Positions 5,806 through 44,414 are shown, counted from the stretch's first letter. The stretch is 64,000 nucleotides of DNA from Guillardia theta CCMP2712 (GCF_000315625.1 NW_005434593.1:254915-318914), one strand, 5' to 3'. Made by a program: numbers and translations. Notes: a model not told the origin generated them from the sequence alone.

Positions 5806-5822
5806 TGCAAAACGAGACTGGC

Positions 5823-15259: not shown

Positions 15260-16120
15260 ATAGGGGTGTGGGGTGTGGGTAGACAGGGTGGAGGGGGTGG
15301 AGGGGAGCGGAGCAGGGGGGGGGGGGGGGGCGAACAAGGAGGAGACTGTGAAGGATTCGGAAACTCGGTGGACTTGTTGCCTGCCCACCCCCTACCCCCC
15401 TTGCCCCCAAGGTCATGCGTGACTGGAGCACCCCACCACCCCCTCTCCCAATCAGGGGCATCACGTCCCTTATTGGCCGCATCTCCAAGGATACATCCGT
15501 CATCTGAACCAGCCCAGTGTACTGTTCTCACTGAAGATTTGACTTAACTTTGAGTAAAATGTTGAAAGGTTGCTGCACCAGAAAACCGTTGAACCGGGCT
15601 ACAGCAACTTGGCAAGCCTTCGGAAGCCTGCGCCGGTGCCCGGCGGCGGGCCAGTCACGGTGTATCGCCGGGGCACCCGGTACTTGCGGGGACGTATCAT
15701 GGGTGCAGTACTACTTTCCGAGTTCATTAGCGGCTCTGAACTCTGAGTCATCACCGAGTCACGCCACAGAGTCGTGTCAGATCTTTACTGGCAGAGTCTG
15801 ACTCGGCCCGGACTCGAGAGTCCGGGCCTCCCACGGACCGGTCACCAGTGACTGCCGCAGTGGCACCGCCGGGGCCCGGCGGCCGGGCGGCGTGACACTG
15901 ACTCCCGACGGGTGACGCCCGGCGCCCGGGCCGGGCCGCGTACTGAACGCCGTAGTACCGTACGACTCCGGGTCGCCCGCACTGCAGCGCCACAGGCTGA
16001 GTGCCACCCGGGAGCCTGGATCTGATCGCCATGATCGGCGGCCCGGCGCACCACCGTCAGTGGCACGGTGCCCTCGGAGTCCCGGCGGGCAGGCAGCCTG
16101 GGGTTCACAGTGATGAACCT
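15260..16120. promoter_or_regulatory. Full intergenic module upstream of copy B
   Basis: GGGT/ACCC block at 15260-15450; GACTTAACTTTGAGTAAA at 15541-15558; CCGG/GAGTC/GTAC-rich GC block at 15620-16100. Confidence 0.5.
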
Positions 16121-16237
16121 CACTAAATTGTAGACGCCTTTGCTTGTTTGAATATTAATACAACATTAAGACAAGATGATGTCTCTATCACATCGCTGAA
16201 TGGAAAGGAAGCGGCGGCAGATCGGACGGTCAGACGC

Positions 16238-16974
16238 TCACGGGCATTCTCCGGGGGGAAGCATGCAAGGCTCGTTCCCTCCATTGTTGTTGCCCCCATT
16301 CTTGGTCCAGGCGTCCGCCTCGTCGTTGGCGTGTGAGATCTGCGACAAGGCTGAGCGCAAGCAGCGAAGACCTTCAGATCGCCTCACCTCATCTTGGTGC
16401 ATGTCGTCCAGATGCACCATCCTCGCCTGAGCCTCGAGGCCTTTCTTGATGTATTCACTGAGCTTAGGAGACATGTCTTGCCCTGCGTCTCCTCGTCAAG
16501 CCACACTCGACATACAAATCCGTGAGAGCAAACACAGAGTCATTCACAACGAGAGTATAACCATCAAGGAGAGAAAAGGTAAGATCAGGGCTGACATGTT
16601 CGGCATACCTATTCTGACCATTCTGTTCAAATCATCAGCAATTCCTGGGCCAAACCAAAGTTCCTGTAAGCAAAGGAAATTAATATCCTCACAACAGAAA
16701 CGTCAATGCTTCAGAAACCTGCGTTCTGGCAGGCTTCATCATCAGATAGTAAGGACGTTCAGCCCTCAACGTCGTGCTTGAAACCTGGAAAGGATCTTAC
16801 CAAGCGAAAGCCAAAAACAGATAATTACCAGGAAAAAAATAGAAACAATACCAAAACCGATGATCCCAGCAACTATAAAAAAGAGTTGAGAAAACTGTCA
16901 TAGCGTGCAACAGACAGAAATGTTTTGATTGGACAACAGGTTGGAATTTTTTCTATGCCACTGGCTAGGTTCAT
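16238..16974 (-). CDS. Small secretory/type II membrane precursor, multi-exon; start uncertain
   Basis: Splicing gives ..AGIIGFGIVSIFFLVSSTTLRAERPYYLMMKPARTQELWFGPGIADDLNRMVRIGQDMSPKLSEYIKKGLEAQARMVHLDDMHQDEISHANDEADAWTKNGGNNNGGNEPCMLPPGECP*, with consistent intron phases. Confidence 0.65.
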
Positions 16975-17158
16975 AATACTACTTGATATTCCAAGAACGA
17001 AGTATCACGTTAGAGCGCATCTTGGCACCTGACCCTGGCTCCGTACTTACTATCATCCTCCTCTATCCTCCTCACGCTCCTCCTGCTCCCTCTGATCTTG
17101 ATCTCGCTCCCTCTCAAACTTTCCTGCTCTTGATCCTGTTCCTGCTCCTCCCTCCTGA

Positions 17159-17198
<40 letters not shown>

Positions 17199-17865
17199 CC
17201 ATCCTGCTCTGCTCCTCCCTCCTGCTCCTGTTCTCCTCCACCTCCTTCACCTGCTGTCGCCGCCTTCCGCTCCATTGCCGCGACACTTCGTACGTGTACC
17301 ACATCCCCACTCAATCAACTAGTTCCTCAAAGTTTAGTTCAAAGCTACTCTAGTGTTGCTATTGGGGAGTACCCCACCGTACTAACTTGCCATGTACCCC
17401 CCCTTTATACTCATTTTAACCTACCTATTCCAAATATGGGATACTACCCCTACCCCTCCGTGTTGTGGAAGGTGCCTCGTTTCTTTTCCGTTGATTCAAC
17501 GCTCAATGCTGAGATTTTTCCTCCTCCTCTCGTGTTCTTCTTACCCGCTGCTACCCCTGCAGAGCTTCTCACGATCATGATAATGACCATCCCAGGAACT
17601 CATGGCAACATACACTGCTATCGTCCGAAGTTCCATCTTCCTTTTATGTTTGTACTCTCATTGATTCCTTTTTTCTCACACTTTTCCTCTTATACCATCT
17701 TGCCTTCTCCCTCATGGTCATTTTCTCTTCTGAATCTGCTCTACAAATCCATGTATTAATCCTGCATCCTACATCATCCCCTCTGTGCCCGATCCTATGG
17801 GTCCACATCAAAATCTTAGCATGATTGAGCTGTACTGAAGTCTTTCCCCTTGACAGGTTGCAATC

Positions 17866-18176
17866 ATGAGCGACAAGGACGAATTCAAGAGACTCAACGA
17901 TGATCTGTCTCGATTGCTGCGAGCGTCTGTCTTTCCTGGAGCCGTCTCCTCCTTTCCCAAGTCGTCGGTTACCCACGAGATGCTATCGCAAGCGGACCCT
18001 ATGAACGAAGAGTTCCGGTGAGTACCGGCGTATGTCTGCGAGGTGTTCGACTGAGTGAGTGCATCAGCGTTGAGAAGACGCACTTCAGCAAGAAGTACGA
18101 CCTCAAAAACTTCATGGAGGCAGAGTTTGCTAGAAGGAATCTGTTCAAACAGGTTGCCAAGGAGAGCAAGCAATAG
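17866..18176 (+). CDS. Small hypothetical protein absent from the ORF track
   Basis: MSDKDEFKRLNDDLSRLLR...DPMNEEFR | intron GTGAGT..CATCAG | VEKTHFSKKYDLKNFMEAEFARRNLFKQVAKESKQ*; an acceptor-like TTGACAG lies just before the ATG. Confidence 0.6.
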
Positions 18177-18441
18177 CCGGGATATTCTTTTTGTACATAA
18201 TCTTCACCCTAGTGACAACATCTAATTTCTAACAATTTTGTTTGACGGAGCGAATCCTGCCAACCAGAAGCGTCTCTCCACCACCACTCCCCTTAATCTC
18301 GCGAAGAAACGCACAGAAATTCTACAAGTAATACCTACCAAGACCCGCTATGAGACCCAAACGCTGCAATCTCCCTATATGTACATTCTCTCTTCACTTG
18401 ACGACGTGCCCCATCATCTTCGTCAGGATCTTCACACGAAG

Positions 18442-20905
18442 TCAACAACCCTTGTGCTCTGCAAAGAACATTCTTACATGCTCGGGGTTTTCTCCGTGCT
18501 TCCTCCTCGGCACACCACCTGCTCCAAAGTTGTCAAGTTTGACGCATCGAGTGACTCGCTAGCGCTCACTCCACTTCGAGCTGCGGCTGAGCTGGTCAGC
18601 CTGTAGCTGTCTGGCCTCCAGCTTCATCTCATCCAAATTCCGAGAAATCTGCATGACGGCAACCCACTTCTCCTGCGGGAGTGTTGAGCAGGGGAGCAGG
18701 GAGGGCGTGCAAGATGTCAGGCTCACCCCTTTCGTCACAGGCAGAGAGGAGGACAAGGACGAGGAATCAAAATCGTGCTGCCGTTGCCTGCAGCTTGGTC
18801 ACCTTCAAGTCAGGGAGATAGGACTGTACCTGTGAGCAAGGACGTTGTACAGGATGAGAACTGAATTAGAAGGAGGCTTCATCGACAGTGCTGACTGCGT
18901 TTTTCCTTCGACCCCTGTGCCTGTGCCTGTGCCTGGCCTTGCACTTCCCAACCCAATCCCTGTTTCCCTTCCAGATTCTGTTGAAGCTCCCCTTGAATTT
19001 CCTGCTGCCGACCCCTGACCCGCCTCTCCTCCCACGTAAGCCCCTTCGCCTGCCCCTGCTGCCCCTGCTGCCCCTGCTGCCCCTGCTGCTCTTGTCAAAG
19101 TATCAGATTTATCACTTCCGACTCCAGCCTGAGCTCCACTGCTGCGACTTTCACTGTGCATACCAGACCCCTTCGCACCAGGGAATTCAAAGCCCCCCCC
19201 TTCAAAATCTTCGTCTGTGAGAAGACATCAGTGGTGTTAAGCCCATCTTGGCATATCTACTTAGAATGAAGAAGATCGTTGCAAACACGTACTCTCGACT
19301 CTGGTGAGGCCCTTCCGCTCCATGTTTCTTCGACTGCTCGAAAACGTCAGCATCGACCCCAGTCTACTTCATCGAGCTGATCACCTTCGATATCGTCGTG
19401 TCAAAATCCACTCTAGAGCACCCTTCCTCAAACTTCTGCACCTTCAAGGCAAGTTGAGCATCCCCCTTGCAGACTGCAACATCAACTCACCGTAAAAGAT
19501 GCAACGTACTCCCTGGCGACGCTCAGCAGTTCACAAGTACGAGCTGCGAGCAACCCTTCAGCGCTTGCTAGGAGAGGATTGCAACTTCACCGATCCAACG
19601 GGACACAGCTTTGTCTGTCATTGGCAGCTCCGCTATCAGATGTTTCTTCGGATCACGCGTGTCCCCCGGCCGTAACACTCCCCGTTTCAGAAGGGGCCTG
19701 GCAATCTGCTGGCGATCAGAAAGGCAGGTCGCAGGGGCAAAGGACCTTGATAATGTCTGCAACTTCTCCATCTCTCATGAAGTTCAAGACTCTGAGGGAG
19801 CACAACTTAGCCCTCTCCTCTCCCCACCAGCCTTTCATCGTTACCGATGCAACCTAGGTATTGTGGACACAGTCTCTACCTGCGACTGACAGTGACGAAC
19901 GAACATTCTCCTCAAAGGAGCAAGGAAACTCTCCTACCTGTACCCTCCTCTCCAGGTGAGGCACAGGAATCTCAACGAGGAACCCAGGAGGCTCCGCTGG
20001 AAGCACAAAGTGCTCACCGTAGCACACAACATAGACCTGTGAACCCGTTACTGACCGGAACGCCAGAGTGCTGGTCGGACCTTCTCAGGCAGCATGCCGT
20101 ATATCCTCTGACCATTGGGACGAACGAAGTGGGAGACAATGCATCCAAGAGCCGTGCTCAGCTCCTCCCTCATGAGATCTCCGTTGGCCATGTACACGGA
20201 ATGAGGAACTACGGGTAGGGTCTCGGCCGGCCAGCAGAGCAAAGACGCTGGGCACTGCCGGGAGGTCAGGCCCATGCTAGAGCCGACGCTGTAGATCTCG
20301 ACAGCATGAGCGTGTGCCCCGTCGTCTTGGATGCTGATGGAGTAGACGACGTCATTGAATCGCATTCCAATGAAAGAGACGTCGTTGTCTATTGCTATCT
20401 CAGCGCCCTTCCAGCTCCTGTTGGAGAACAGAGTGACCACCACTCCCTTGCTGACTCTCAACGACGAGATATCGGTGAAGTGGAGTGCGTCCAGATCGGA
20501 TATGTTCCCGTAGATCGGCATGCTCCACCCCAGAAAGTTCGAATCTTGGTAGATCACCGCCGGAGCTTTCACGGCACGCCTCCCAAGGAAGAACGTCTTC
20601 CAGTGCGGAGGGATCGGGTCATCTTGATCAGGTCTTGTAATTATGATCATCAGCTGGATCGAGAACGCACAGATCGAGAGAGTGAGAAGCAGGCACATCA
20701 TCCTCGCATCCGATCTTGTCCACCATCCAGCAGTTTCCCTCCCTCGCTTCCTCCTTCCTGACCCCCCCGGCAAGTTCCCCGCCACCTCTGTCCCATCAAA
20801 CCTGCTACCAGCAGCATGGCTGCCAGCATCTCTCCTGCTTCCTCCTCCCGAGCCATCCCCTCCCCCTCCCCCTCCCCCGCCAACGCAGCCATGACGGGGC
20901 AGCAT
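18442..20905 (-). CDS. Type II membrane protein: beta/gamma-crystallin domain plus prolyl-4-hydroxylase-like 2OG-Fe(II) fold
   Basis: TM segment LLLTLSICAFSIQLMIII. Crystallin motif VIYQDSNFLG...ISSLRVSKGVVVTLFSNRSWKG...FNDVVYSI. Spliced P4H-like blocks VETVSTIPRLHRVLNFM..IARPLLKR, VFATIFFILS, EGGGFEFP, LSMKPPSNSVLILYN, LPVTKGEKWVA. Confidence 0.75.
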
Positions 20906-20929
20906 GTCGGGAGACCTGTCCTTCACGGT

Positions 20930-21575
20930 CCGATCCGGCTGTAGCCGCATAAAATTTGAGTGCTCGCTCCGAGGCCCGGGCCGATCATATCCGAGTCGAT
21001 GACAGTGAGCCGGCTCCGAGTCCACCCGGAGTCTTCCCGCCGGCCCGCTCGGGCCCGGGCCCAAGCTCAAGCTCCTGAAATAGATATCGCCACCCTTGAA
21101 ATAAATATTCCGTCTCGGACACTACCAGGGGTCATGACCCCTACCCTCCGAGACCCATCATCCTACCACTGAGCCGAGACTCTCTGCCCCCACCCTACCC
21201 TATCCCTGCGCTGTCCAACTTGGATTCAAGTTGGGTCAGACCGGTTCAGGTCAAGTACCCCCATTTTAGTACCCCTGTCATTCCTATACAAACTACCCCC
21301 CTTATGCAGAAGCAGACCGGTTTCTGGACTGACTCGCTGATAGAGCATGAGGATTCACTGATGGAGAAACCTAAATGGGGTGGGTGATTTTTGGTCAGGA
21401 GGGGGTGAAGGTACTCCAAGGGTGGGTACTTCTCTACATAATGAATTATCAAATTAGGGGTACTGTGAGAAATGGGTAGGGTGCTTTGCAGGAGTCAGTG
21501 AAAGTAAGGGGTGGTGCGATTGTGTTGGGTTGGGGTCTTGTTTTTTTTTTGTTCTATTTCAGGCACGGGGGTTTA
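20930..21575. promoter_or_regulatory. Divergent promoter region: GC block, then an ACCCC-to-GGGGT strand-switching block
   Basis: CCGG/GAGTC-rich 20930-21065; AGTACCCC near 21254 and 21269; GGGTACT near 21424 and 21458. Confidence 0.45.
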
Positions 21576-21965
21576 AAAGGAAGAGGAGCGGCAGGGGACG
21601 ATCAAGAAAGGTGAGCCAATGCACGCCAAGCAAACCTGTCAAACAAAGTGATGTTGTGCGATTATGGCCGGAGCTAAGCGTTGAACGCGCTTGATCGTAC
21701 AAGCATGATGTGTGTAGTAGGAAAGGTTTGAGCGTTCACGATCATATGTTCAAAACACATTATAGAAGTATTGTTGAGTTTCAAGTCATGAACCAAGGCT
21801 CATTAAGGGTCGATGGTCAGATGATTTACGATACGGTGCACAGAGATATTAGACAGAATAAGGTAGAGTCATATGGAAGAATGAGCCTTTGTATGCTATG
21901 TCTGTTGTATGCTGTGTCCATTCATTGAGATCTTTCATGTGATTGATCGTCATTTGCAGGGAAAG

Positions 21966-22127
21966 ATGTTCGCTCTCCTCGCCATGACCATGCTCGATGA
22001 CGTCAACACCATCAACACCTGGGCTGAGCCTCACAACGCCAACGGCATCACCCCCAACACCATCATCGACTCCAACGATGAGCCCCCCTGCAACAACCAG
22101 CAGCGCATGGCTGCCCGTGGCTACTAA
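21966..22127 (+). CDS. 53-aa peptide with strongly biased codon usage
   Basis: MFALLAMTMLDDVNTINTWAEPHNANGITPNTIIDSNDEPPCNNQQRMAARGY*. Codons are mostly C-ending (AAC, ATC, ACC, CCC) in an AT-rich context; TTTGCAG acceptor 6 nt before the ATG. Confidence 0.75.
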   Translation: MFALLAMTMLDDVNTINTWAEPHNANGITPNTIIDSNDEPPCNNQQRMAARGY

Positions 22128-22525
22128 GCGTTCTGGCTAAGTAAAGTCTGAAATTTAGGATCCTGCCCCTGCACCCCACTCTGATCGCTTCTTTTTCTCT
22201 ATCTCTTTCCTTTCGAGAGTCTTCCTCACAAACTGGACCTTATCATCTTGTCAAACTTGCGTCCAGGATGAGCGTGTTGAATTCATGTTGGCTGTTGAAC
22301 TTCCTGCTCAAGACGGAAAATATCAACTTGCACAGCAGTGTGTTATCGATGATATCGAGAACAACAGTATTTGTCTGTTAAACATTTAGACAGTATTATG
22401 TCCAATTGTGTATGATACTTGTAAAAACTTTTATTCAAGACATTTTGCGAACTTACAGTTCTTCAACAGACTGGTGTGCCATTAGCAACAAACAAAAACT
22501 GTACAAAAGACAAAACTACAGATGA

Positions 22526-23910
22526 TTAACTAATGGTACAATTCTTGCCCTCCAAATGAGACTTCTTGTTCATCCACTCAACTCGCACCTGGAATGAGGT
22601 TTAGATTTCTTGCAAGAATAATACAATCCTTTAGGAATACCTTGCCCTCGGGGGAGATATCCAACAGAGTAGTGCATGCAAGGGATATTCTAAACTTCTG
22701 ATATACACTTGGTGCGTCGTGTGCCATCAATCCCTGTTTGACAAGCCTCGGTCAAGGCAAAGGAGAAATCAACTGATGAAGACATTGACGTTACCTGAAG
22801 CGTTGCTTCAGTGATTCCGTGCGCAGAGACGTCGATGTCCGGATTGTTTTCATGTCCAGAGGTGGAGTGATTGGCTGCTTGGTTGTTAGAAGAACAAGGA
22901 GCCCCAAATCAAAGCGCTCACTCAGGACAGCCATCAGCAGGGCGAGAAAATCTGCATGAGACACCTGTAGAGCAATGAGATCCCAGAATGGGACAAGTTG
23001 CACCTTCACACTCACCAGCAGCAACATTCCGTCTTGACCCATCTCATTGTGAAGGTACGCGCTTTTCAACCAAGATGAAAGCCTTTCCGCTCTGAATTCA
23101 AGACAAGTAAACCAAGGGTTCTTTTCCATTGATATCTTGCTAACCGCTGGATAGCCTCCGTTGTCCCTTCGAATCCTCTCCCAGAGTCCCATGGGCCAGA
23201 AGGGGCAAGCTTGACACATCGAATCCAAATTGCTGTAACAAGTCGTCAGATGGGAAGCTCAGTGCAGGGAGATGTCGTCAAGACCTGCTTGATCGTCATT
23301 GCTTCCATTGCTCTTCCCGTGACCTTGTTGAACTGTAGATTTCGACTGTTAGCCGTCGAGCGCAGATAGGTCAAAAGGCTGTCTACCTGGCCATTTGGCG
23401 ACCGCTGGGCTGTGTAGATCCCTCCAACTTCGCAAAGATCTCCTCTCACCTCCGCTGTCTGTTGTGACTGTGTCATCAAACCCTCCCGATCGTCAGCATC
23501 ACAACACTCACGGGGAGATTGAGCGCCCCGACGATCACCTTCGCAGTTTCACATGCTCGTCTCATGGGAGACGTCAAGACGCGGAACCTTAGCAGCGGAC
23601 CTTTTCAGTGCCTTCAAGCTTCAACAAATATGCTTACCTCTTGCATCCTGATTTTTTCGGCAGTTTCTTTGCGTGCTCCATCAACCTCTTCAGCTGCTCT
23701 TTCCCCGCGGGTGAAAGTTCGGGGTCGTCTTGGCGCATCGAGCTGGTTGGAGTGTGAGGAGGCGAAGCATTGCACATGCATCGTGCGAACTCACAGCCAT
23801 TCGTCTTGAGCCTGTTGCTCGCTTGCCTTCCCTGATGTGATTTTGGTATGGACCTGAGCTTGGACGATGTTGTTCATGGATTGTGCATGGCGGATGAGGA
23901 GAATTTTCAT
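22526..23910 (-). CDS. Histidine phosphatase superfamily (phosphoglycerate mutase-like) protein, multi-exon
   Basis: MKILLIRHAQSMNN...DPELSPAG...TSPMRRACETA...LCEVGG...VSHADF...VRVEWMNKKSHL. Confidence 0.85.
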
Positions 23911-24352
23911 GTTTCCAGAGCTTGCTGAAACCACAGAACATCAGAATTGGCCACGTGCTCGTGAGCAAAACTAACTTTTCCTTCTCAATCTTTCTGTTTA
24001 CCTACAATTACAAAGAGACACACGCGAAAGAAAAGTGCGTGAGGGAGGAGAGAAGCATTCTATAGATCTCATTGTGATGATATGCACGATCAAAAATCGG
24101 ACAGGAGGGTATAGCTAGAGAACAACGTAAGGAAATAGAAGACGAAGTTGCGATACAAGATGTTGAAAAGAGGAGAACAAGTTGGCAAGCGCGAAGCTCG
24201 GTAAGTTGCAAGCAGTTGTCGAACATAAGACAAAGTAACAAGAGGTTTGGGTAAGTAAAGAAAGGGCTCGTTGAGTACAAAGGAGCAGGTGTGAACGAGT
24301 CAAGAAGGACAAGTAAGAAAACAAAGGAGCAAGAAGAGAAGAATGAGGGCAG

Positions 24353-24353
24353 G

Positions 24354-24385
<32 letters not shown>

Positions 24386-24394
24386 TGTTTTGTT

Positions 24395-24444
<50 letters not shown>

Positions 24445-24603
24445 GGTGGTGGTGGTGGAGGTGGAGGAGGAGGGAAGGGGAGGAGGAGGAGGAGGAGGAG
24501 GAGGAGGTGGAGGTGGTGGTGGTGATGGAGGAGGAGGAGGAGGAGGAGCAGGAGGAGCAGGAGGAGCAGGAGGAGCAGGAGGAGAAGGTGGAGGAGGAGG
24601 AGC
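24353..24603. repeat. Compound microsatellite (GTT)n-(GGT)n-(GGA)n-(GGAGGAGCA)n
   Basis: Directly visible. Confidence 0.95.
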
Positions 24604-24839
24604 ATGTGTGGCATCGGAGTTGGGGGATATTCGTGTTGCGCATGCTTGAAAGGGACGATCATTTAGTCCGACAAACTGATATTTGGGAGGGGGGGTATAA
24701 ATTATTATCGTGACAACATAATTCATGACATATTTTGAAAATATGTTTGATAAATATCAAAATAACAAACAAATATTGATGATAATAGTTCATATTGATG
24801 CCCTTGAAGGAAAGATCACAGCTCCCTGGAGCAAGGCAC

Positions 24840-25850
24840 AAACCCATACCACTTCGTTTCAAGGGTGGGTTTCACAAAACATGGGTAGGGTAATTATGAT
24901 AGGGGTGGGGGGTACTTTTTATTTTTAAAATTATGCAGATTTGACTGTCCACCAAACTTCTCATTGAAATAAGAACTAATTTACATTTGCTGTCTTAGAT
25001 TCTTTTCATAAGGACATAGAAATCAATTTCAACAGGAGGGGTGGTGTTAGTAATTCTGGAGGTGGTGGTGGTGATAATGGATTGTAGTGGGTAGGGTGAT
25101 AGTTCGAAACGTTCCAATATCGTGACTGTTTTGATTCCAAACTTGTGGCCTTTTGAAAGGTTGCGTTTTGTTTATGTACCCATTCACCCACCCTTGGGTT
25201 CTCGTCCACATTCAAAGTACCCCCACCTACACAGAATTTCATGATGACCCCTACTTTCCGCACAATTCAGTATTAAAGTACCCCTCATAGAATCACCTCT
25301 ACCCCAGCATTCTTCACATGCTATGACCACCACCCACCTCCACCTTCAACCTTCAGCACCCTTCCTATCGGGGGAGCACAAGGATTTAAAAGCATATTCC
25401 CCGGGCCCGGCTGCCCCTGTCATCCGATTACGTACCGCCCCGGCCCGGGCCATGACCGTACACCCGGTGCCACGCGGCCGCCGGAGGCACCGGGTGGATT
25501 GAAGTTGGCACGGACACTGAGTACCCGGTACCCGGCCCGTACTAACTTTCAGCTTATTCAACTGAGCGTAACTTCTTTGAGTAACTCAGTGACTAGCATC
25601 ATTGAACTCCGAACTCTTGAACTTGATCATAGGTGGATGATCAGCCGTTACCGCTGCGCGTTGCCAAGTTGAACTTGTTACTTTGAGTGAAATGGCTGGC
25701 TCAGTCAGCTTCCGATCAAACTTTGAAAGTTGAAGCGCCGTGAGAGTCAAGCCTCCTCGACGGGAGTCTCCTGATTGTATCCTCGTACTGTTTTTTGAAT
25801 TCACTTTGAGTCAAGGATTACATACATCTAAACTTAACTGAAGGCTGAAT
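24840..25850. promoter_or_regulatory. Intergenic module with several CTTTGAGT-type copies
   Basis: GGGT/ACCC block at 24840-25370; CCGG/GTAC block at 25400-25545; CTTTGAGT copies at ~25575, ~25681 and ~25804. Confidence 0.5.
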
Positions 25851-26139
25851 AGTAAAGAGGAGGAACTGAACCTGGAATCAGAAGCCTCGGAATGACACTT
25901 GGAGGAAGTTTCGGCAGTGCACAAAAAGGAACTTGAATAAAGGCTCCCTCGAATCAGTCACTCGGATGGAAAATTTCAGTGGCGGTGCCCTTGTGTACAG
26001 ATAAATTGCACATGGTCGTATGATTAGCAGAGCTACGCATTGAATAAATTCTCCATCTTCACATAAAGGCTATTCCCACCCTGGGTAATCATTCGACGTC
26101 GACAAGTCAGTGTAAGCCTTCTCCACGAATCGCACACTC

Positions 26140-27159
26140 TCAAGACAACCTCAGGGTTTGAATCCATGGACCGGAAAGGATCGTTACCAAAGTCAATCTG
26201 AGGGAATAGCCATAAGTGATCTGGGGGCGCATTGAAACAGGCATTACCTGTACATCATCCCTCAACAAGAACCAGAATGACCTGGCCATCATGGTGGCGT
26301 AAATATTGAATAGCGACGTGAAGACCTGAATAAACAAAGTAAAAACTCCTTAGAATGCTCAAAGAAATGTTGGACACCATAGACAGCGAAGAATACAGGT
26401 ATGCGAAGGATTTGAAGCGTGAAACGTCGTACTTTGTGCACGACATCACCTGTGTAAATTCACATGATCAATGGTGGTAAGGCAGCGATTTTCAGATGCA
26501 AACCTTTGGATCTTGACATGATGTGGCGTTAGGAAACAGTTCTCTGCATTTGTCGCATGATTGATTCTCAATGGCAAGGGCATCCGTTTCACTAGCAAAG
26601 TTACAAAGTTCAGCAAAAACACGTCTGCTCAGAAAATGTATACATGGTCGACAAACGAATGATCTCGAAGATCAGGTACAAGAACGCAAAAACCATCCAT
26701 CCGATGAAGACGATCTTAGCCAGAGAGGAGTTTCTCTTGCTGTGCGCGAGCATGCCAACAATCTATATGACAATTAGCTCTGCAGGACTGTAGCGACATG
26801 CATGCCTGGGCGGCGCCCAAGAAAATGAAAAGTAAGATTCGGTAGACACCCAGGCCGTAGGTGTTGAATGATCCTACTTCTTCCCAAACGTTCTGCTTCC
26901 TGAGCAGGCTCAATCCCTCATAGAACACCCCGAGCACGCAGAGTCCAAGAACAAACTTGCAGAAACTCCTGTAGCCAGCTCAGAGAACTTGTAGAGGAAG
27001 AGTCAGAAGGGGAACCGGAAGCCCTTGTCCAAGTCATAGCATCCACAGATGAGCCTGGTGGGTCTCAGCAGGACCAGGAGGAGCGGAGGCAGGTGCATGC
27101 CCTCTTGACCTTGCTGCTAGCAGTTTGGCATGGCAGCCAAGCCTTCGTCGGTGGGCCAT
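26140..27159 (-). CDS. Hypothetical multi-pass membrane protein, multi-exon
   Basis: Exons with hydrophobic segments: LICGCYDL, KFVLGLCVLGVFYEG, VYRILLFIFLGAAQ, KIVFIGWMVFAFLYLIFEII, ISLSILRSFYFVYSGL; not every splice phase resolved. Confidence 0.5.
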
Positions 27160-27696
27160 CTAATTTTTGGGGGTAGGGGTACTCAAGTACCCCTCCGATT
27201 TACAGTCAAAAGACGGGTATAATGAGGGTTTCAAATGAGGGACGTAGGACAGAAGTCCGCCTCAGGGCATGTAATCAGGCGGGCCCCGGGGATGCCCAGT
27301 GTCCGGATCATCACTGAACTGAAATTGAGATGACAATGCCTATCAACCACCTGTTGGTACATTCCTAGGACCACCTCTAGTGCAGGTATAGAATACCCTA
27401 GGACCACCTCCCGCTGTCAAGCGCCATGCTTTGAGTAAGCTAACCTGATACCCATAATGGCGGGGAAAGTTTGGCGGGGCGAGGGAAAGGAAGTGCATGG
27501 GCGGCAATGTGCAAGAGACGCTGGGAGAGGGCACACCATGCTGGAAGGATGATGATGCTTCTAAGGAGGAGAATTGTGCAGGTACCAAGGACGTTGACTC
27601 TTGGAAGGTGCCAGGAGAGGAAGGCAGCGCTAATATTGACTTAGTGCTTGGTTGACACAGAGGATTTTGGTGTGAGCGACTACCTGTCGGGACAGC

Positions 27697-30600
27697 ATGG
27701 GGAGTTCCAGATCTCTGCTGTTCTTGATCATGGCAATCCTGCAGGTTCGGAAGTTCGAGGGTTCGTTGGTGAGCTCCTGGAGCTTCAATGGTGACCTGAG
27801 TGACTCTTCAGTCTATTCCAACACTCTGCAAGGAAACAATGTAGAGTTCTTGACTACCACAGCATTCCAATCGATTCTTTGGGGACAATACGCACATGTC
27901 GCTGGAGACAACTCATACGCCAGACGTGTTGACTTTGACTTCATGGTTTCTAATGGGGAGTTCACTGTGGAGTTCTGGGTCAAGATCGATTCGCAGCAGT
28001 ACAACATCTTCACATTTGCGAATCTGACAACTACCTTCCTGCAATTTTGGAATGTTGGATCACAAGCTGGCTGCCAATTTGAAATCGGGGGAGAGTTCCC
28101 AGTCATTCCCGACGCTTTATGCACTGCACTGCAGAGCAATTCTTGGCACCATGTCGCGATAGTTGGAAATTTTACAGAGATCTTATGGTATCTTGATGGC
28201 AACTTTGAAGGATCAAGCTCTTTGCAGTCCAATCATTCCATCCCAGGTGTAGGAAACCTCACCATCGGTTTCAATTCAGACCTGGCAAACTTTTCAGCAG
28301 GGACATCTCAAAGCATGTCTGATTTTCGAATGTGGAACACAGCTAGGTCAGCAGCCAGCATCCAAGAGTTCCTTTTCACTCGCGTGCCGTACTTAAATTG
28401 CTCTGCAGGATACGAGGGGTTGGTACAAGCAAGCGGATTTGACTGTTCGCAATGCAGCCAGGGCATGTACAAATCCTCTGCTGGTATCCAGCTCTGTAGT
28501 ACCTGTCCAGCGAACAGCTCTTCAACGACAAACCGAGAGAATTGCTTGTGCAACCAAGGATACGAACAAACCGACCAATCAAGTCTCCAGTGTACTATGT
28601 GCCAACGAGGAACATACAAAGAAAATATTTCAGATCAAAGCTGCAAACCATGCGATGCCGGCACCTACGCAGACCAGGAGGGCTCGACCTACTGCACGGC
28701 CTGCACGGGGAACGCAAGCTCGCCGGTAGCAAGCGACAACATCACAGCATGCCTGTGCTTGCCGGGGTACACGGGCAGCTACGCGGAGGGGTGCAGGGCT
28801 TGCGAAGTCGGGAAGTACAAGCTTGTCAACGGGACGGACACCTGTACGCCATGCGCGATCGGGACATACAAGAACATGTCCGGGCCGGGGGCTTGCTACG
28901 AGTGTCCGGCGCACTCGTCGACGGCCAACACGAGCAGCGTGTACTTGACGGACTGCGAGTGCAACGTAGGGTACAGCGGGGAGAAGGGAGGACCGTGCAC
29001 GATCTGCTCGGCCGGGTACTACGCCGACGTCCCTGGACAGACGCAGTGTATGGCATGCGACGCCGGCACCTACGCAGACCAGGAGGGCTCGACCTACTGC
29101 ACGGCCTGCACGGGGAACGCAAGCTCGCCGGTAGCAAGCGACAACATCACAGCATGCCTGTGCTTGCCGGGGTACACGGGCAGCTACGCGGAGGGGTGCA
29201 GGGCTTGCGAAGTCGGGAAGTACAAGCTTGTCAACGGGACGGACACCTGTACGCCATGCGCGATCGGGACATACAAGAACATGTCCGGGCCGGGGGCTTG
29301 CTACGAGTGTCCTCCCTTGACTGGGACACCTCAAATTGGAAGTTTTTCAATAGAGGATTGCATTTGTATTGCCGGGTACTATCAATCGAATGTCTCGAAT
29401 TGTACCATTTGTCCAACGGGAATGTACAGTTCGATTGCTGGAAGCACAGCCTGCACTGCATGCGACGCCGGCACCTACGCAGACCAGGAGGGCTCGACCT
29501 ACTGCACGGCCTGCACGGGGAACGCAAGCTCGCCGGTAGCAAGCGACAACATCACAGCATGCCTGTGCTTGCCGGGGTACACGGGCAGCTACGCGGAGGG
29601 GTGCAGGGCTTGCGAAGTCGGGAAGTACAAGCTTGTCAACGGGACGGACACCTGTACGCCATGCGCGATCGGGACATACAAGAACATGTCCGGGCCGGGG
29701 GCTTGCTACGAGTGTCCGGCGCACTCGTCGACGGCCAACACGAGCAGCGTGTACTTGACGGACTGCGAGTGCAACGTAGGGTACAGCGGGGAGAAGGGAG
29801 GACCGTGCACGATCTGCTCGGCCGGGTACTACGCCGACGTCCCTGGAAAGCCGCAGTGTACGGCATGCGACGCCGGCACCTACGCAGACCAGGAGGGCTC
29901 GACCTACTGCACGGCCTGCACGGGGAACGCAAGCTCGCCGGTAGCAAGCGACAACATCACAGCATGCCTGTGCTTGCCGGGGTACACGGGCAGCTACGCG
30001 GAGGGGTGCAGGGCTTGCGAAGTCGGGAAGTACAAGCTTGTCAACGGGACGGACACCTGTACGCCATGCGCGATCGGGACATACAAGAACATGTCCGGGC
30101 CGGGGGCTTGCTACGAGTGTCCGGCGCACTCGTCGACGGCCAACACGAGCAGCGTGTACTTGACGGACTGCGAGTGCAACGTAGGGTACAGCGGGGAGAA
30201 GGGAGGACCGTGCACGATCTGCTCGGCCGGGTACTACGCCGACGTCCCTGGACAGACGCAGTGTACGGCATGCGACGCCGGCACCTACGCAGACCAGGAG
30301 GGCTCGACCTACTGCACGGCCTGCACGGGGAACGCAAGCTCGCCGGTAGCAAGCGACAACATCACAGCATGCCTGTGCTTGCCGGGGTACACGGGCAGCT
30401 ACGCGGAGGGGTGCAGGGCTTGCGAAGTCGGGAAGTACAAGCTTGTCAACGGGACGGACACCTGTACGCCATGCGCGATCGGGACATACAAGAACATGTC
30501 CGGGCCGGGGGCTTGCTACGAGTGTCCGGCGCACTCGTCGACGGCCAACACGAGCAGCGTGTACTTGACGGACTGCGAGTGTATCCCTGGATACTGGGGT

Positions 30601-34638: not shown

Positions 34639-34799
34639 AGGGAAAGTTGAATTTGAAAAATGTTATGTTACATGTTTCTTCCTGTCCTCCTACAACTTCC
34701 TGCATGCCCGGCTGCCTGTCTGCCTCATACAGACATTGACAGACTCTGACGGCTCCTGCCGGTCCTGGCTCGCATCGATCGCTGCGCGTCGTCGAATGT

Positions 34800-36385: not shown

Positions 36386-36419
36386 TGGAGGAAGACGAGA
36401 AGATGGAGAGATGGAGTAA

Positions 36420-36712
36420 GGAGAGGAGGAGGAGGAGGAGGAGGAAGAGGAAAAATGAGGATGAGGGTGAGGGAGATCAAAACGGAGAGAACGAGAAAAA
36501 GGAAGACGAAAATGGAGAAGTAGGAAGAAGAACAGGAAAAGGAAGAGGAAGAGGAGGAAGAGGAGGAAGAAGAAGAGGAAGAGGAAGAAGAGGAGGAAGA
36601 GGAGGAAGAGGAGGAAGAGGAAGAGGAAGAAGAGGAGGGGGGGGGGAGGAGGAGGAGGAGGTGAAGGGAAGGAAGAGGAAGAATAAGGGAAGAGGAGGAG
36701 GAGCAGGGATAT
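36420..36712. repeat. GGA/GAA purine microsatellite tract
   Basis: Directly visible. Confidence 0.9.
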
Positions 36713-36896
36713 GAGAAAAGAGGAACCTGGGTTCTAGTGGCGGATGTGCCTCGATGAAGCAGCCAGTCAAACACAGAAACAATCCCCTGGCGTTGTTATA
36801 TGTAAGGAGTGAGAGAGCAATGAGGAAGTCTGACTAGTTGAACGCTGAGCTTCCTGGATTCGGGGACATCTAAGACAAGTGTGAGAGGCAGGCAAA

Positions 36897-36943
36897 GTCA
36901 GTCGGTCAGTCAGTCAGTCAGTCAGTCAGTCAGTCAGTCAGTC
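36897..36943. repeat. (CAGT)n tetranucleotide microsatellite
   Basis: About 11 copies, one interrupted. Confidence 0.95.
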
Positions 36944-36961
36944 AAGTAGCTCCAGAGTTCT

Positions 36962-38526: not shown

Positions 38527-38717
38527 GTTGATGGTGAGGAGAGGAGGAGACACGGAGGAGATAAAGTTCGTACGATCCTCCCCCTCCTCCCCCCTTACCT
38601 CCTCCTCCCTCCTCTCCCCTTCCCTGTTCTCCCCTCCTTATCCATCCCATCCCATCCCATCCCATCCCATCCTATCGTCCATTTGGCGACTTTTCTTTCT
38701 CAGTCTCCTACCTCACC

Positions 38718-38842
38718 TCTCCTGCTCTCTCCTGCTCTCTCCTGCTCCCTCCTGCTCCCTCCTGCTCTCTCCTGCTCTCTCCTGCTCTCTCCTGCTCCCT
38801 CCTGCTCTCTCCTGCTCTCTCCTGCTCCATCCTGCTCCCTCC
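38718..38842. repeat. (CTCCTGCTC[T/C])n 10-bp minisatellite
   Basis: About 12 copies. Confidence 0.95.
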
Positions 38843-39650
38843 TCTTCTCTCACCATCGCATAGCTCCTCCAAGGAGCCGTACGCCGCCATTGCGCCCGAT
38901 CGCCCCCTTTCCATGGGAACCCGCAGAAAGAAAATTTTGAAAAGTTGAGCCGGGGTATCGGAGTAGGGAGGGAGGGACCGCGTGGAAGGAGGAGGAGGAG
39001 CAGGAGGAGGAGGGGGAGGAGGAGGAGGAGGAGGAGGAGGAGGAGGAGGGAGGGAAGGAGGGAGGAGGTGCCAGAGGGCAGGGAAGAAGTAGCAGGGAGC
39101 CAGGGGGGGGGAGGAGGGGGAAGAGAAAAGCCAGGGGGGGGCGGGGGGAGGAGGGGGGAAGCCAACGTTCAGAGGAAGGGCGGCAGACAACTGCGGCGAG
39201 ATGGAGCAAGAAGCATGTTCACAAAAATGGCGGGAAACGGAGGGAAGGGACGAGGAGAAGGTGAGGAGAGAGAGAGGGAGAGGGGAGAGAGGAGGCGAAG
39301 GGAGGGAGGGGAAAGAAAGGGAGTGAAGGGCGGGAAGGGAAGGGGAGGGGAGGAGGGGAGGAGGGGAGCGGGGGACGAGATTTGCGTGGTTTCCTTCCTC
39401 CATACCCTTCTAGCCTACAAAGCAATCTCTTCCTCACCTATTCTTTCCCTTCCCTTCTACTCCCTCCCCTTCTCTCACAGCTTCTACCCTCACCACTTCT
39501 CCCCCACATTCTACCTCTTCACATGAAACCATAAGGAAAACTCTCGTTGCGCACGGGTAGACTTGTGTCAAGATAGCACGAAAGGAGAAGTTCTTATTCA
39601 AGATCTCAGAGAAGTAAGAAATACACGGGAGGAGACAACAACAGCCGCTA

Positions 39651-40717
39651 TCAAGCCTTGAGCACGCTTTGTATATCCTCAGAATTCATCGATCCAATCA
39701 TCTGCCCCACCATTTCACCCTTGCAGCCAACAAGACAATATCGAGCTCACCGTCATAAACTCAGCATCCCTGTAGTCTTTGATCAACATCTTACAACCAA
39801 CCTGCCCAGCCCGTCACCGCCATACCCGCCAGCAGGCAGCAACTCTTACCGATGTCAGTGTGTCCGCATGCTGACTTGTCAAAATCCCAACTGTGAAGGC
39901 TCCCGACTTGACGCCAGCCGTCGCTCCTGACGGCGAGTCTTCCACCACCACTGTCTCCTCCGGCTTCAGCCCCAGTCGCTCCATCGCGATCTGGTAGGGC
40001 ATCGGGTCGGGCTTGGCCTTCTTGCACTCGTCCCCGATGACGATGGTGTCAAACCAGTCCAGCCTTCCCAGCACTGACAGCATGAACTCTGCGTTCTTGC
40101 GCGGGGCGTTGGTGACAGCAGCCTTTTTGATCCCTGCCTGGTCGAGGAAGTGGAAAATCTCCTGCAGGCCTAGGATAGGATCAGCACACAGGAGGAGGGG
40201 GCATGCAAGGGAAGATCGGGGGACCTTCAATGGGTTTCAGCTTGCCTACTGCCATCTCTCTGAATCTCGCTTCCTTCATCTCACTCCATCGCTCGGCCTG
40301 CTCCACCGTCCAGTGCGGGAAGAGGTCCTTGCAGATAAGCGCGTTCTGCCGTCCTGCTATCATGGTGCGAAAGAAGTGCTCGTCGATGGGTTTGCCGCCA
40401 TTGATCCCCTCCTTCATCAACAGCTCCTGGAAGACTTCAAAGTGCACAGGATCAGAGTCGCACAGCGTCCCATCCACGTCGAACAGGATGCCTCGGACGG
40501 CTCCAGGACCTGAAGCAGCTTGAACCGCCGTTCGGGTCATCTTGAACCAGGGATGCCGCAGGGAGGGCGGCGGCTGCAAGGAAGGAGGAGAGGACCTGAG
40601 AGAGTGGGGAGGAGGAGGAGGAGGAGACTGAGGAACGAAGCTCTCTACAGCTGCCAGGCTGGCGCATAGCAGCAGCAGCACCCGGCCCCTCCGTGCACCG
40701 CCTGCATTCCCCGACAT
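39651..40717 (-). CDS. HAD-superfamily phosphatase (subfamily IA, plant Sgpp-like) with a bipartite plastid-targeting leader
   Basis: GILFDVDGTLCDSDPVH, AAVTNAP, KPDPMPY, VEDSPSG..AG motifs; signal peptide ending AVES-F followed by a S/P/R-rich transit-like segment; last exon ...EDIQSVLKA*. Confidence 0.9.
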
Positions 40718-40759
40718 ATAAAGGTGGGTGAACCCTCATCCCCACCTAGTTTGGAGTTT

Positions 40760-40865
40760 CACTGAGTCAGCTGTGAGTCAGTAGCAGGCCAGAGCAGGCC
40801 AGGTAGCAGGCCAGAGCAGGCCTGGTACCAGGCCAGTAGTCTGAGTCAGTTCACGGATGAGTCCT
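40760..40865. promoter_or_regulatory. Proximal promoter with three TGAGTCA sites and AGCAGGCC repeats
   Basis: TGAGTCA at 40763, 40774 and 40842; four AGCAGGCC copies; palindrome GGCCTGGTACCAGGCC; 45-150 bp upstream of the HAD ATG. Confidence 0.55.
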
Positions 40866-41018
40866 CCCCGACGGACGCTGATCGGAGCGGCCAGAGCCTT
40901 GGCCAACACTCAGTTTTTCCTGCAGAAGTTCCTGTGCAGAGTGAGTCCGATCCAACAGCTTCCATGTTTCTTCATTGATTAATATTTCTTAAACAACAGT
41001 ACAGGAGGGGCTTGACCT

Positions 41019-43609
41019 CTATTGGTTGGAACTCTCGCTCCACTCTATTCCTGGCACGCTCTGCCTAGCGACTTGACAGGCTCTCATGATCGGAGTCAGG
41101 ACAGTCAGCGCCTGCAACGACGGAACAAGTCAGTGTCCATTGAACAACAGCCAGACACAGCGAGGAAGGCGGAGGGATGTTTTGTCAGAACGATGAGGTA
41201 TTGGAGAAGGACGAGGTATTTGAGGAGGAGGAGGAGGAGGACACATACCTTCTCTTTGGCAAAGTCGAGCCTCCTGGATCCCTCGAGAGAACGTCTGAGC
41301 TGCGATATCTTACCCATGACATGCACATCCTTCCGATGGGACTTGAGCATGCTCTGGAAGTCTGACTTTGAACCACCCTTGTGACAGGGCCAGAGCGAAG
41401 GCCGAGATCGCATGTCCTCGTTGAACTCGTCCTCTTGCGCAAAGTCGTAGACAAAGATGACTCGCTCCAGCCTTCCCCACTCGTCGAAATCTCGGATCGT
41501 GGTGACTTTGACTATCATTCCGTCCACTTTCCCGCCCACTCTCCCGATGATGGGCCAGTACCGCACGGTGTTCTTGGAGGTGCAGGACGAGCAGATGTCC
41601 AGGAGGATAGTCAGGTAGTCCAGCTCAGACCAAGGGAGGTCGACCTCGTTGCGCAGGAAACGGCATTTGAACTCTTCATGGTGGAGCCCAAAGAGGTGAC
41701 TGAGCGTTGGCCCGAACCGACATCCAGCTCTGTCCCCTGTGCTCTTGTTAGTCTCGAAGGCGATCCATCGGTCGTGCCCGAATCTTGATTGGAAGCTGTT
41801 GTAGATGTCTTGGGAGGACTCCTCCAAGTCACCGGGCTTCGCCGAGGATTGAGTGAGGAGCTTGTTGTTGGCTCGGGTGGACTGCAAGCGAACGAGAAAG
41901 CTCAGATCTGAGATCCCATCGTTGAGAACCTTGAGGAGATCGTTGGGCAGGTTCTTGAACAGTTTGAGCAGAGTGCTCGAGTGGCATCCGAACTCCCAAG
42001 ACCGTTTCATCATCATCGGGTTGATGCCGATGACCGTCGAAGCTTGCAAAAGTGCTTGAAAGTCCGGACTCTTGGCGTCCTCAAACGTCATCGAGCAATC
42101 AAGTGACAGCGGGCACTCGATACTCTCCGGGGTGAGGAAGCTCACGTTTCCGTTAACCTTCGCGTCGCACTTCGATCCAACTCCCCGCAGCAAACAGTTC
42201 CCACAGGGCAGCAAGCCGTTGCATCTCTGCTTCTTCCTCCTACACTCACTGCATGCTCCGTTGGTCAGCCTTGACGGCCTCGTCCTCGCCTTGGAGCTTG
42301 TCAACGTTGGAGGTGGTCCAAGCAGCAAATCGAAGTTAGAATGAGGCTGCATTGCAGATTCGTGCAATACATTCAAATTATTCCAAGAGTTTTCAAGTCC
42401 CCTGACACCAACAGGATAGCCGACAGTTTGATGATAGGTGACGTCACCATATTCCACCATCTGAGCAGCATTCGAGAAATGCCCGTTTGAGACTGCAGAG
42501 TGTTTGATCAGACAAGCCTCGAAAGTGTTGGGTGCCCCACTCTCGAGAGAGGTGGAGAAACGTAGAGCAGGATTTGTCCCGGTGAAGAACTGATCCGAGT
42601 GGCCATAGTTTTCAACACACTGCTGGTCAAGCCCTTGAAATCCATCCTCATTTTCGTTGGCCACAGGCGTGAAGATTGAGCTGAGGCCGACCTGGTTCAA
42701 TTCTTGACAAGCATGAAATGGCGAAACGGAGAGGGGAGAGGCTGAAGGTGGCGCGTTGAGGGAGGAGCCGCTGCCAGAACAAGAACTGATGCTCGCAGAA
42801 CTCTGAGAGCCTTGCATGAGAGAGCTCGGCGTAGACTGACGCTCGAAAGATTCTTCCGTACACGAAGAGAGCCAATCTGAAGAAGGACTCGAGCGACAGT
42901 CGACAGGTCGGGCGATCTCCGAAGCGCCAACGTAACTGGTTTTGGTGTAGCTAGAAGCATTGTCGTTCGCTGATATCGAAAATGTCGTGAGCGCTGAGCT
43001 GTGCGGTGGTTCTGAAACATGGTCGAAATGGAATTGCGATGAACTGTTGGGTACATTATTTCCATCTGGCACGGCGAAGGGAAGCGGGCCAGGCTCGAAA
43101 ATCGCGGGGGTGTACGTTGGAGCAGGGACGGCAACAGAGGAAGAGGAGGAGAAATATTGATCGTTTGCAAATGGTTGATTCATCGGTTGTGGGGAGGGAT
43201 CCTCGTCGGCAGTGATCTGTCCGGGCACAAACTGAGTTGTAGGGACTTGCTGGGGAAAGGGGTAATTTGCTCCGAACTGGTACGGTGCTCCATACAAACC
43301 ATGCTGGACAGGGTCTGATGCTGCGAGTGGCTCATGGTAAAATGGTGGTGCCAGTGAGAAATTCGCACCATTTTGTGATGAAACTTCGAACGCCGTGGCA
43401 TTGTTCGTCGGCATATGCGGTATATTCCCATCATGATTGTTCTGGCAGGGATTCCATTGATCTGGCTGTGTCTCTGGCCACTGCAACCCTTGGTAGAGGT
43501 TTGGTTCAAGCACTTGAGAGTGAGTTTCAAGGTAGGGTAAGTTGGCTCGATGTACAACATTATCTTCATCAGTGCTTGGATAAACTGTGGGATGAACGTT
43601 GGTGTTCAT
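41019..43609 (-). CDS. Zn(II)2Cys6 (GAL4-type) binuclear cluster transcription factor
   Basis: ACSECRRKKQRCNGLLPCGNCLLRGVGSKC fits CX2CX6CX5CX2CX8C; long P/Q/S-rich N-terminus; terminal intron and last exon ALTVLTP...SSNQ*. Confidence 0.9.
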
Positions 43610-44079
43610 CTCAATCTGTTGCAATTATACTGTATGATTCCTTGTATGCATGCGAGCAAGAATACTGTTGTGAATTCCTGAGGTAAAAACATTTCAGACA
43701 AACTCTACAGATAAATCAAGCATTCAAAGGATAACAACTGCACGATGGCTAAGCGACAGCAAACCATGTTCCCTCCCTGACACTAGGGGCACTTCCTGGT
43801 TCAGTTCTCCTTTTCCATCTCTTGATGCACTTTAACCGAATCTCGAAAGCTCGTCTAAACATCATCCCTCCTCTTCCTCAGCCCCTTTGACCTAGCTGAT
43901 CATTCTAACTCTCCTCCCTCCTCCCTCCTCCCTACTCCCTCCTCCCTCCTCCCTCCTCCCTCCTCCATGTGACCCTCGCTATTGATGTAACTTTCGCCAT
44001 ACCCACTATTTTATCTTGACAACACTGAAATAATGGACCAAGATTTGAAAATTAATGGATATCGTCCAAAATGGTTCAA

Positions 44080-44410
44080 ATATCTGTGGGTGCCTCCCTT
44101 ATTATTGTACCCCTTCTTTCTCCACGTTTCCGAACAAAAAAGCTAGAGGGGGGGTGGGGGTCCCAGATATCTATCTTCAGAGTCACTTATCAATCCGTAC
44201 CCTACCCCACTTATTCCATGCTACCTGCCTATGAAAGGTACCCCTACCACCGGTCAGTCCCGCTTTTTACTACAGCCGTTTCCGATGAGTGACCAACCGA
44301 GTTGTCCTCGTACTGATTTTTAACTTAACTTTGAGTAAAGTAGGTCTGAGACTGTCACTGAAACCGGGCCCGGGGGGACAGGCCCCGGGGATATGCCTGA
44401 GGCGGGCTAG
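44080..44410. promoter_or_regulatory. Divergent promoter module between the Zn2Cys6 and fucosyltransferase-like genes
   Basis: GTACCC(C) three times at 44105-44245; TCCTCGTACTGATTTTTAACTTAACTTTGAGTAAAG at 44305-44340; CCGGGCCCGG block. Confidence 0.55.
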
Positions 44411-44414
44411 CGCC

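Follow-up and report, generated by a model that had tools for sequence, protein, structure and literature searches.

Word zones and odd-palindrome GC islands on the gene-start side of Guillardia theta intergenic DNA: a candidate upstream architecture

The stretch of Guillardia theta CCMP2712 nuclear DNA analysed here (64,000 nucleotides of scaffold JH993045.1, hereafter the window) carries, in the DNA between its genes, recurrent blocks of three kinds: zones of short words made of G or C runs, GC-rich islands tiled with odd palindromes, and an element of about 75 nt, the AACTTTGAGT element. A first reading made from the sequence alone, the sequence-only reading, had joined these blocks and a purine/pyrimidine microsatellite tract into one ordered module pointing toward a gene start, and had taken the module for a promoter or nucleosome-positioning code, possibly with long 5' introns or outrons.

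Annotated genes were retrieved for 2.6-24.9 kb of the window (window coordinate = 24873 minus the coordinate in locus L001), and four further annotated G. theta loci were used, L002, L088, L089 and L090, three of which hold paralogues of the gene for a 53-aa protein at 21966. Densities by sequence category cover five loci (106 kb), the profile search for the element covers 148 kb, and RNA depth comes from four runs, of which the raw-read run is 3'-biased with 60-nt reads. The zone words are GGGT[AG]GGG and GGGGTACTT, densities count GGGGTA/GGGTAC on both strands, and odd palindromes with arms of at least 3 were compared with 200 dinucleotide shuffles per island.

Word zones and GC islands on the gene-start side

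Where do the blocks lie relative to genes? G-words occur at 3.31 per kb in tandem and 3.33 per kb in divergent intergenic DNA, against 0.44 within genes and 0.10 between convergent genes; the corresponding densities of GC words are 1.47, 0.78, 0.27 and 0.10 per kb. In the four loci outside the window, 89 G-words fall in 26.7 kb of 5' regions, which is 4.1 times the dinucleotide-shuffle expectation, and a single one in 9.7 kb of convergent DNA (region-level Mann-Whitney, p = 0.0005), while GGGT[AG]GGG occurs 35 times outside the window with 3.3 expected from shuffles. Across 28 upstream regions almost no words lie within 0-400 nt before the ATG, and the profile peaks at 400-900 nt. The blocks therefore show both a restriction to the 5' side and a preferred distance, and this part of the sequence-only reading held up.

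The vocabulary of the zones is likewise non-random. When 5' intergenic DNA of the five loci was contrasted with genic plus convergent DNA, the top k-mers were GGGTAGGG (27 vs 0.3) and GGTAGGGT (21 vs 0.3), and the same contrast gave 47 vs 2.5 for GGGTGGG and 12 vs 0.3 for GGGGTACT. GGGGTAC is found 28 times in the window with 4.0 expected, a count that no shuffle reached; 15 of the 28 lie in intergenic zones and most others in a coding repeat. Zone words come about once per 37 nt, as 5-6-nt dimers followed by 15-50 nt of spacing, with no motif periodicity beyond these dimers, and they form runs that are locally confined to one strand. A G-quadruplex reading was rejected, classical four-tract motifs being only 2-4-fold enriched. 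Palindromes of the type GGGGTACCCC, akin to the inverted pair at 27165-27200 in the window, were seen at 3885 and 5222 of L088.

What sets the GC islands apart is their odd palindromes, which exceed the shuffles 3-4.5-fold and are mostly centred on G or C. The same test gave no palindrome excess for even palindromes, for GC-matched coding controls or for the G-zones. In the largest island (tested over 15590-16105) 50 odd palindromes face 11.3 in shuffles, and over 5800-6280 there are 31 against 11.8 expected; 0/200 shuffles reach the observed count in either case. The largest island also contains nested inverted repeats, including an imperfect pair at 15642-15677 / 16037-16072 (72%), and has a fold z-score of -2.9, with -1.1 for another island. 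The CCGGATACTCC tandem array is local and spans 5822-5934. The islands vary in size from 50 to 500 bp and share the core word CCGGGCC(C)GG, and all 10 window matches to GGGCCCGG fall inside them (10/10; 2.7 expected from shuffles). The block vocabulary, which had been claimed to be shared between instances, is thus real and non-random, and it is replicated outside the window.

Islands can be called objectively from odd-palindrome density, and of 17 called in this way all but one belong to intergenic DNA with a gene 5' end in it (16/17). In tandem regions the island is found 65-445 nt away from the neighbouring gene's 3' end, which fits a placement at the distal margin of the upstream DNA. CpG content is a poor guide to them: the observed/expected ratio is about 1.0-1.3 in islands, 0.85-0.93 in coding DNA and 0.75 in the window overall, and since coding DNA is not CpG-depleted, it is the odd-palindrome tiling and not the CpG content that defines the islands. 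The islands thus combine an excess of odd palindromes centred on G or C with no excess of even ones, no mature RNA coverage and a position upstream of genes. Full-text literature searches returned no counterpart to odd-palindrome islands.

The proposed microsatellite layer fared differently. Genes contain 0.94 purine/pyrimidine tracts of at least 20 nt per kb, and the density is 0.68 between convergent genes, 0.70 in tandem and 1.40 in divergent intergenic DNA. At such a background density a tract between zone and ATG is expected by chance, and this layer is not part of any module.

Table 1. Coordinates of zones, islands, element copies and associated features (window positions unless stated; odd-palindrome counts are observed vs expected from shuffles)
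Feature	Position	Strand	Remarks
G/C-word zone (GGGTAGGGTAC, GGGGTACT, relatives)	8200..8820	.	polarity switches inside
CCACCCC-type zone	12040..12300	.	580-840 nt upstream of ATG 11460 (gene B)
G sub-zone (short), then C sub-zone	15260..15450	.	
C-type zone	17360..17560	.	within 590-nt divergent region of genes D/E
C sub-zone, then G sub-zone	21080..21570	.	400-900 nt upstream of ATG 21966; no RNA depth
G sub-zone, then C sub-zone	24860..25340	.	950-1430 nt upstream of ATG 23910; no RNA depth
G/C-word zone	27165-27200	.	divergent region; small perfect inverted pair GGGGTACT-CA-AGTACCCC
C-type zone	44100..44260	.	divergent region 43609-44416
G-type zone	57975..58240	+	adjoins assembly gap
GC odd-palindrome island	5850..6172	.	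carries tandem array of 26-nt CCGGATACTCC; objective call
GC odd-palindrome island	8840..8961	.	10 vs 3.6, 0/200 shuffles; objective call
GC island, odd palindromes centred on G/C	15587..16097	.	largest in window; objective call
GC island	20970..21044	.	about 920 nt upstream of ATG 21966; no depth in four RNA runs; objective call
GC odd-palindrome island	25402..25536	.	14 vs 3.6 (25385-25545), 0/200 shuffles; no RNA depth
Small GC island	27232..27314	.	divergent region, minus gene (start near 27100) / plus gene (ATG 27697); objective call
Small GC island	44324..44399	.	directly upstream of ATG 44416; 7 vs 1.2 (44345-44405), 0/200 shuffles
AACTTTGAGT element	15519..15592	+	abuts GC island; faces 3' end of minus-strand gene D; nhmmer E = 4.7e-12
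AACTTTGAGT element	25774..25848	+	faces 3' end of minus-strand gene; nhmmer E = 1.9e-12
AACTTTGAGT element	44301..44373	+	sense, 80 nt upstream of ATG 44416; nhmmer E = 8.9e-15
AACTTTGAGT element	L089 9806-9732 (other scaffold)		points toward gene start 935 nt away
Outron / unspliced 5' region of His_Phos gene	23911..24344	-	contig X6 colinear with 23795-24344
(GTT)n(GGT)n(GGA)n microsatellite	24354..24602	.	tract kind at background density; not module-specific

The conserved element, turnover and RNA at the blocks

The AACTTTGAGT element has a consensus of approximately (C)TCGTACTGATTTTTAACTTAACTTTGAGTAAAGT and, 10-14 nt further on, GTCACTGAA, and it includes an AT-rich stretch. The profile search found four solid copies, with E-values of 1e-12 to 1e-14, and elsewhere weak partial matches only. 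Of the solid copies, W44329 and L089-9777 point toward the next gene, as do three weaker variants (W27429, W20955 and L090-19445), and the order element, island, zone, ATG is seen at L089-9777 and W20955. The mRNA of the minus-strand gene at 25781-27100 ends inside the element copy at 25774-25848, at 25781-25791, where the RNA contig ends. Two particulars of the sequence-only reading had to be revised: its instance running from 17323 to 17866 is a weak element match (E = 2.7), and the gene start that it set at 15022 is annotated at 14872. Within the window CTTTGAGT has 7 matches, all on the plus strand regardless of the direction of the neighbouring gene; as an 8-mer on its own it is marginal (3.0 expected; 4/100 shuffles reach 7). 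In 25500-25699 a few plus-strand RNA reads (depth 0.69, minus-strand depth zero) begin near the first CTTTGAGT copy and are too few to interpret.

Several identities for the element were considered and rejected. It is not the spliced leader (SL), the known G. theta leader being absent from the window and different from the element. A shared first exon ending TTTGA|GT is contradicted by the RNA, which shows no splice junction departing from 20961 and whose loose ends ahead of 21963 fail to match such an exon. Nor is it a general poly(A) signal: one mRNA end lies inside it, as described above, and nothing similar accompanies the mRNA 3' ends at 22413 and 22481. Metagenome matches to its 17-mer core, 85 in number, are all chance matches with unrelated flanks.

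Apart from this element, the blocks do not behave as copies of one another. BLAST of the window against itself gave no match between blocks, and an all-against-all BLAST at word size 7 of 22 zones and islands from the five loci aligned the ~75-nt element only, with no common consensus of a repeat family in either search. The claim that the copies cannot be aligned end to end, made against a transposon, is borne out by both searches. The inverted repeats detected in the blocks are internal and imperfect, and no termini common to several blocks were seen, in a comparison that included no systematic search for target-site duplications; the window has no Rfam match at the gathering score and no tRNA genes.

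The family of the 53-aa gene allows the turnover of upstream DNA to be followed. The upstream DNA of five paralogues is unalignable, and still G/C words are found 0.4-1.3 kb upstream in 4/5 of them with the proximal 400 nt empty; in one copy a lone word lies some 280 nt before the ATG. As two environmental cryptophyte contigs also lack the zones (see below), the pattern is lineage-specific, and it is maintained or regenerated as word density and not as sequence. Copies of the gene, of which G. theta has at least five, lie at 21966-22127 of the window, at 8146-8307 and 10201-10362 of L088, and near 10463-10624 of L089 and 10064-10225 of L090; the second copy in L088 is unannotated. The gene reaches an RNA depth of about 12,000, its protein has 98 relatives in cryptophyte and metagenome data, and the protein has no Pfam family match.

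Are the blocks part of an RNA? In the four runs they have no mature RNA coverage, even beside a gene of depth ~12,000: depth is zero or near-zero over 20900-21899 and 24611-25500, with that small gene adjacent. Its mRNA begins at 21963, straight after a tttgcag acceptor, and its annotated start at 21788 is without RNA support. The published 17-nt G. theta spliced leader is CTCGGCGGCTGGTCAAG (PMC5619915). Among the RNA contigs over 20900-26899, this leader is carried by loose ends at 23917 and 23926, belonging to the minus-strand His_Phos gene with ATG 23910, which places SL acceptor sites at 23917-23927, 7-16 nt before the ATG, and marks this gene as trans-spliced. As contig X6 is unspliced over 23795-24344, the outron of this gene is at least 434 nt long, and a transcript contig of a paralogue of the 53-aa gene extends upstream by at least 255 nt. 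Around the gene at 44416, RNA-like runs hold at most 0.80 of the sampled words in 44340-44700. Since the coding share there is 0.77, in agreement with this figure, the mature mRNA probably does not include the small GC island at 44324-44399.

Candidate explanations and comparable systems

We tentatively favour the reading that the blocks form a G. theta-specific upstream regulatory or chromatin architecture, acting at the DNA level and composed of layers that vary independently. What speaks for it are the strict 5'-side restriction, the distance peak with its word-free proximal region, and the persistence of the pattern across unalignable paralogue promoters. In this architecture a zone of G-run words, with its runs on one strand, is centred 400-900 nt upstream of the ATG; in many cases a GC island of 50-500 bp follows at the far edge, next to the neighbouring gene; occasionally a ~75-nt AACTTTGAGT element abuts the island; and the word-free proximal 300-400 nt would hold the core promoter and the outron, with a pyrimidine-AG acceptor and the SL attached just before the ATG. 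The word arrays and islands would act on DNA, as protein-binding or nucleosome-excluding and boundary sequence, and would establish the promoter, or shield it from its neighbours, in a genome that is compact, with selection on word density and not on exact sequence. Of the promoter-and-outron proposal in the sequence-only reading, the 5'-side position stands and an outron is supported at one gene (23910), whereas the single oriented module and the microsatellite layer do not.

The island is distal to the G-zone in 4/4 tandem regions that have both, but as 3 of these 4 lie in the window, the block order is suggestive only, and the layers vary independently instead of forming one ordered module. 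Several observations weigh against this architecture. The common polarity toward the gene that had been proposed is not seen: the G-rich strand is the sense strand of the gene in about 60% of words (about 75:50), G-then-C and C-then-G arrangements are both present without a consistent orientation, and 2/4 solid element copies face a gene 3' end. Genes without blocks exist, for example in L002 and L090. The odd-palindrome tiling is unlike ordinary binding sites. Two environmental cryptophyte contigs with an orthologue of the 53-aa gene lack the zones (0.56 and 0.09 words per kb), which indicates that the pattern is young or fast-changing. Gene starts were taken from an imperfect draft annotation, in which at least one (21788) is wrong, and any function is inferred from position alone.

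Could the blocks mark promoters without serving them? A possible, if somewhat unlikely, explanation is that they are a functionless by-product of a local mutational process, in which repair or replication of open promoter DNA would, time and again in this lineage, leave short insertions or template-switch copies that write the odd palindromes and G-run words. We consider it chiefly for the odd-palindrome tiling (odd enriched, even not), the strand-homogeneous runs, which would fit a directional process, and the lineage specificity seen in the two cryptophyte contigs; the variable island size, the local CCGGATACTCC array and the paralogue promoters without sequence conservation point the same way. 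However, no insertion event was caught: the one near-identical pair compared for micro-insertions, a 99% duplicate at 56802-57257 / 60847-61301, ends abruptly where homology just stops and is uninformative. The 400-900 nt preference and the word-free proximal 400 nt require an extra assumption, and the ~75-nt element is conserved as sequence. That a lineage-specific process acting locally on open promoter DNA repeatedly adds short templated insertions and so creates the odd palindromes and word arrays, with promoter-side DNA continually rewritten while word density is kept, we regard as unlikely.

The outron at 23910 beside a trans-spliced ATG, the upstream extension of the paralogue transcript and the element copies that point toward the next gene, with the shared order at L089-9777 and W20955, could also be read at the RNA level: the blocks would belong to a transcribed outron starting at or near the AACTTTGAGT element, with G-runs and GC hairpins as processing or trans-splicing signals. 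Such signals should be strand-fixed, whereas sense polarity is about 60:40 and half of the solid copies of the element are turned to the 3' end of a gene, and there is zero depth over 20900-21899 and 24611-25500; mixed polarity and absence of RNA make this improbable. A decayed promoter-targeting transposon family, or one of miniature inverted-repeat transposable elements (MITEs), would account for palindrome-rich recurrence in 5' regions, for the imperfect inverted repeats near island ends, such as those in the largest one, and for the alignment of the ~75-nt element and island start at 3-4 loci. It is very unlikely nonetheless, as neither BLAST search aligned anything beyond that element, shared termini were not found, and strand-homogeneous runs are at odds with terminal repeats that come in pairs. 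Low-complexity sequence occurring together by chance would suit the purine/pyrimidine tracts and the marginal CTTTGAGT 8-mer, but against enrichments of 4- to 90-fold that are replicated in independent loci it is hardly credible, and for the G-zones and GC islands it is already refuted.

How does the architecture that we favour compare with known systems? Like vertebrate CpG-island promoters, it has GC-rich islands and strand-asymmetric G-runs on the promoter side. The islands do not, however, satisfy a CpG-island definition, the G. theta genome not being CpG-depleted, and the G-zones, 0.4-0.9 kb upstream of the ATG, are poor in CpG (0.29-0.41). Homotypic G-rich promoter boxes include GT/CACCC boxes and the plant telo-box with site II motifs. 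They too consist of short G-rich words, here GGGTGG and GGGTAGGG, repeated upstream of genes, but the G. theta zones comprise 5-25 copies over 200-1400 bp in single-strand runs, and their words differ from the TTTAGGG telomere repeat of this alga. We know of no binding factor for the zone words. Protists have lineage-specific core promoter elements, such as the initiator and flanking promoter region (INR/FPR) of oomycetes and the initiator (Inr) of Trichomonas. The AACTTTGAGT element resembles these in being short, conserved and endowed with an AT-rich stretch, and 2/4 solid copies lie in sense 80-935 nt upstream; unlike them, the other 2/4 face a gene 3' end.

Promoter-preferring transposons and MITEs are likewise recurrent in 5' intergenic DNA and palindromic, whereas the G. 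theta copies are unalignable and terminal repeats were not found. The SL outrons described for G. theta (Roy 2017, PMC5619915) agree with our data in the position of the acceptor, a short way upstream of the ATG, and in the 17-nt leader, which the 23910 mRNA carries; that work covers the spliced leader, and upstream word zones and GC islands are not described there. Mitochondrial GC clusters and palindromic repeats are also short GC-rich palindromes scattered in intergenic DNA, but they are organellar and form consensus families, while the G. theta islands are nuclear, effectively single-copy and promoter-side; such mitochondrial elements are, by their titles, the subject of PMC4524435 and PMC7218506.

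Our full-text literature searches returned no description of such an upstream architecture. To our knowledge next to nothing has been learnt about the promoters of cryptophytes, one of the major lineages of algae and one still without routine genetic tools. A simple sequence signature on the start side of genes would help to locate gene starts that RNA data miss owing to SL trans-splicing. It would also inform how expression cassettes are designed, and would offer something concrete with which to look for the proteins that bind the blocks or the repair process that makes them. If it is true that a mutational process writes the odd-palindrome islands, this would be a new source of promoter turnover.

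Gene models and repeats in the window

Some neighbouring gene models deserve comment. Gene A, annotated at 7637-5130, contains the GC island at 5850-6172; a 407-aa open reading frame (ORF) has its stop at 6414, and a separate acidic ORF has a possible minus-strand ATG at 5783, so the model may be a fusion of two genes with the island between them. Genes B and C are tandem paralogues that share 1945 nt at 99.5% identity (9153-11097 / 12661-14605) and differ in their ends and upstream DNA, a pattern that suggests recent gene conversion. In a protein search the 771-aa ORF at 9148-11460 matches a product encoded in the window and the G. theta paralogue GUITHDRAFT_114055, and a paralogue of B/C at another place in the genome bears the name sulfotransferase-domain protein. 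In the His_Phos gene, three RNA contig sets have an extra G after 23201 relative to the window, which shifts the frame and would be either an assembly error or a strain difference.

Further along the window, an ephrin-receptor-like / TNFR-like ORF of 1527 aa contains a 405-nt tandem repeat at 28649-30581 (4.8 copies, 90-100% identity). Positions 47206-57290 are occupied by a very long armadillo-repeat gene whose repeat unit is 123 nt and whose ORF, 2325 aa in length, has 47 Arm repeats according to Pfam; a search with its protein, aimed at more G. theta loci, returned no G. theta paralogues. A 456-nt copy of the 5' end of this gene, 99.1% identical, lies at 60847-61301, and an assembly gap (a run of N at 57739-57837) separates the upstream region of the gene from a (TCC)n tract.

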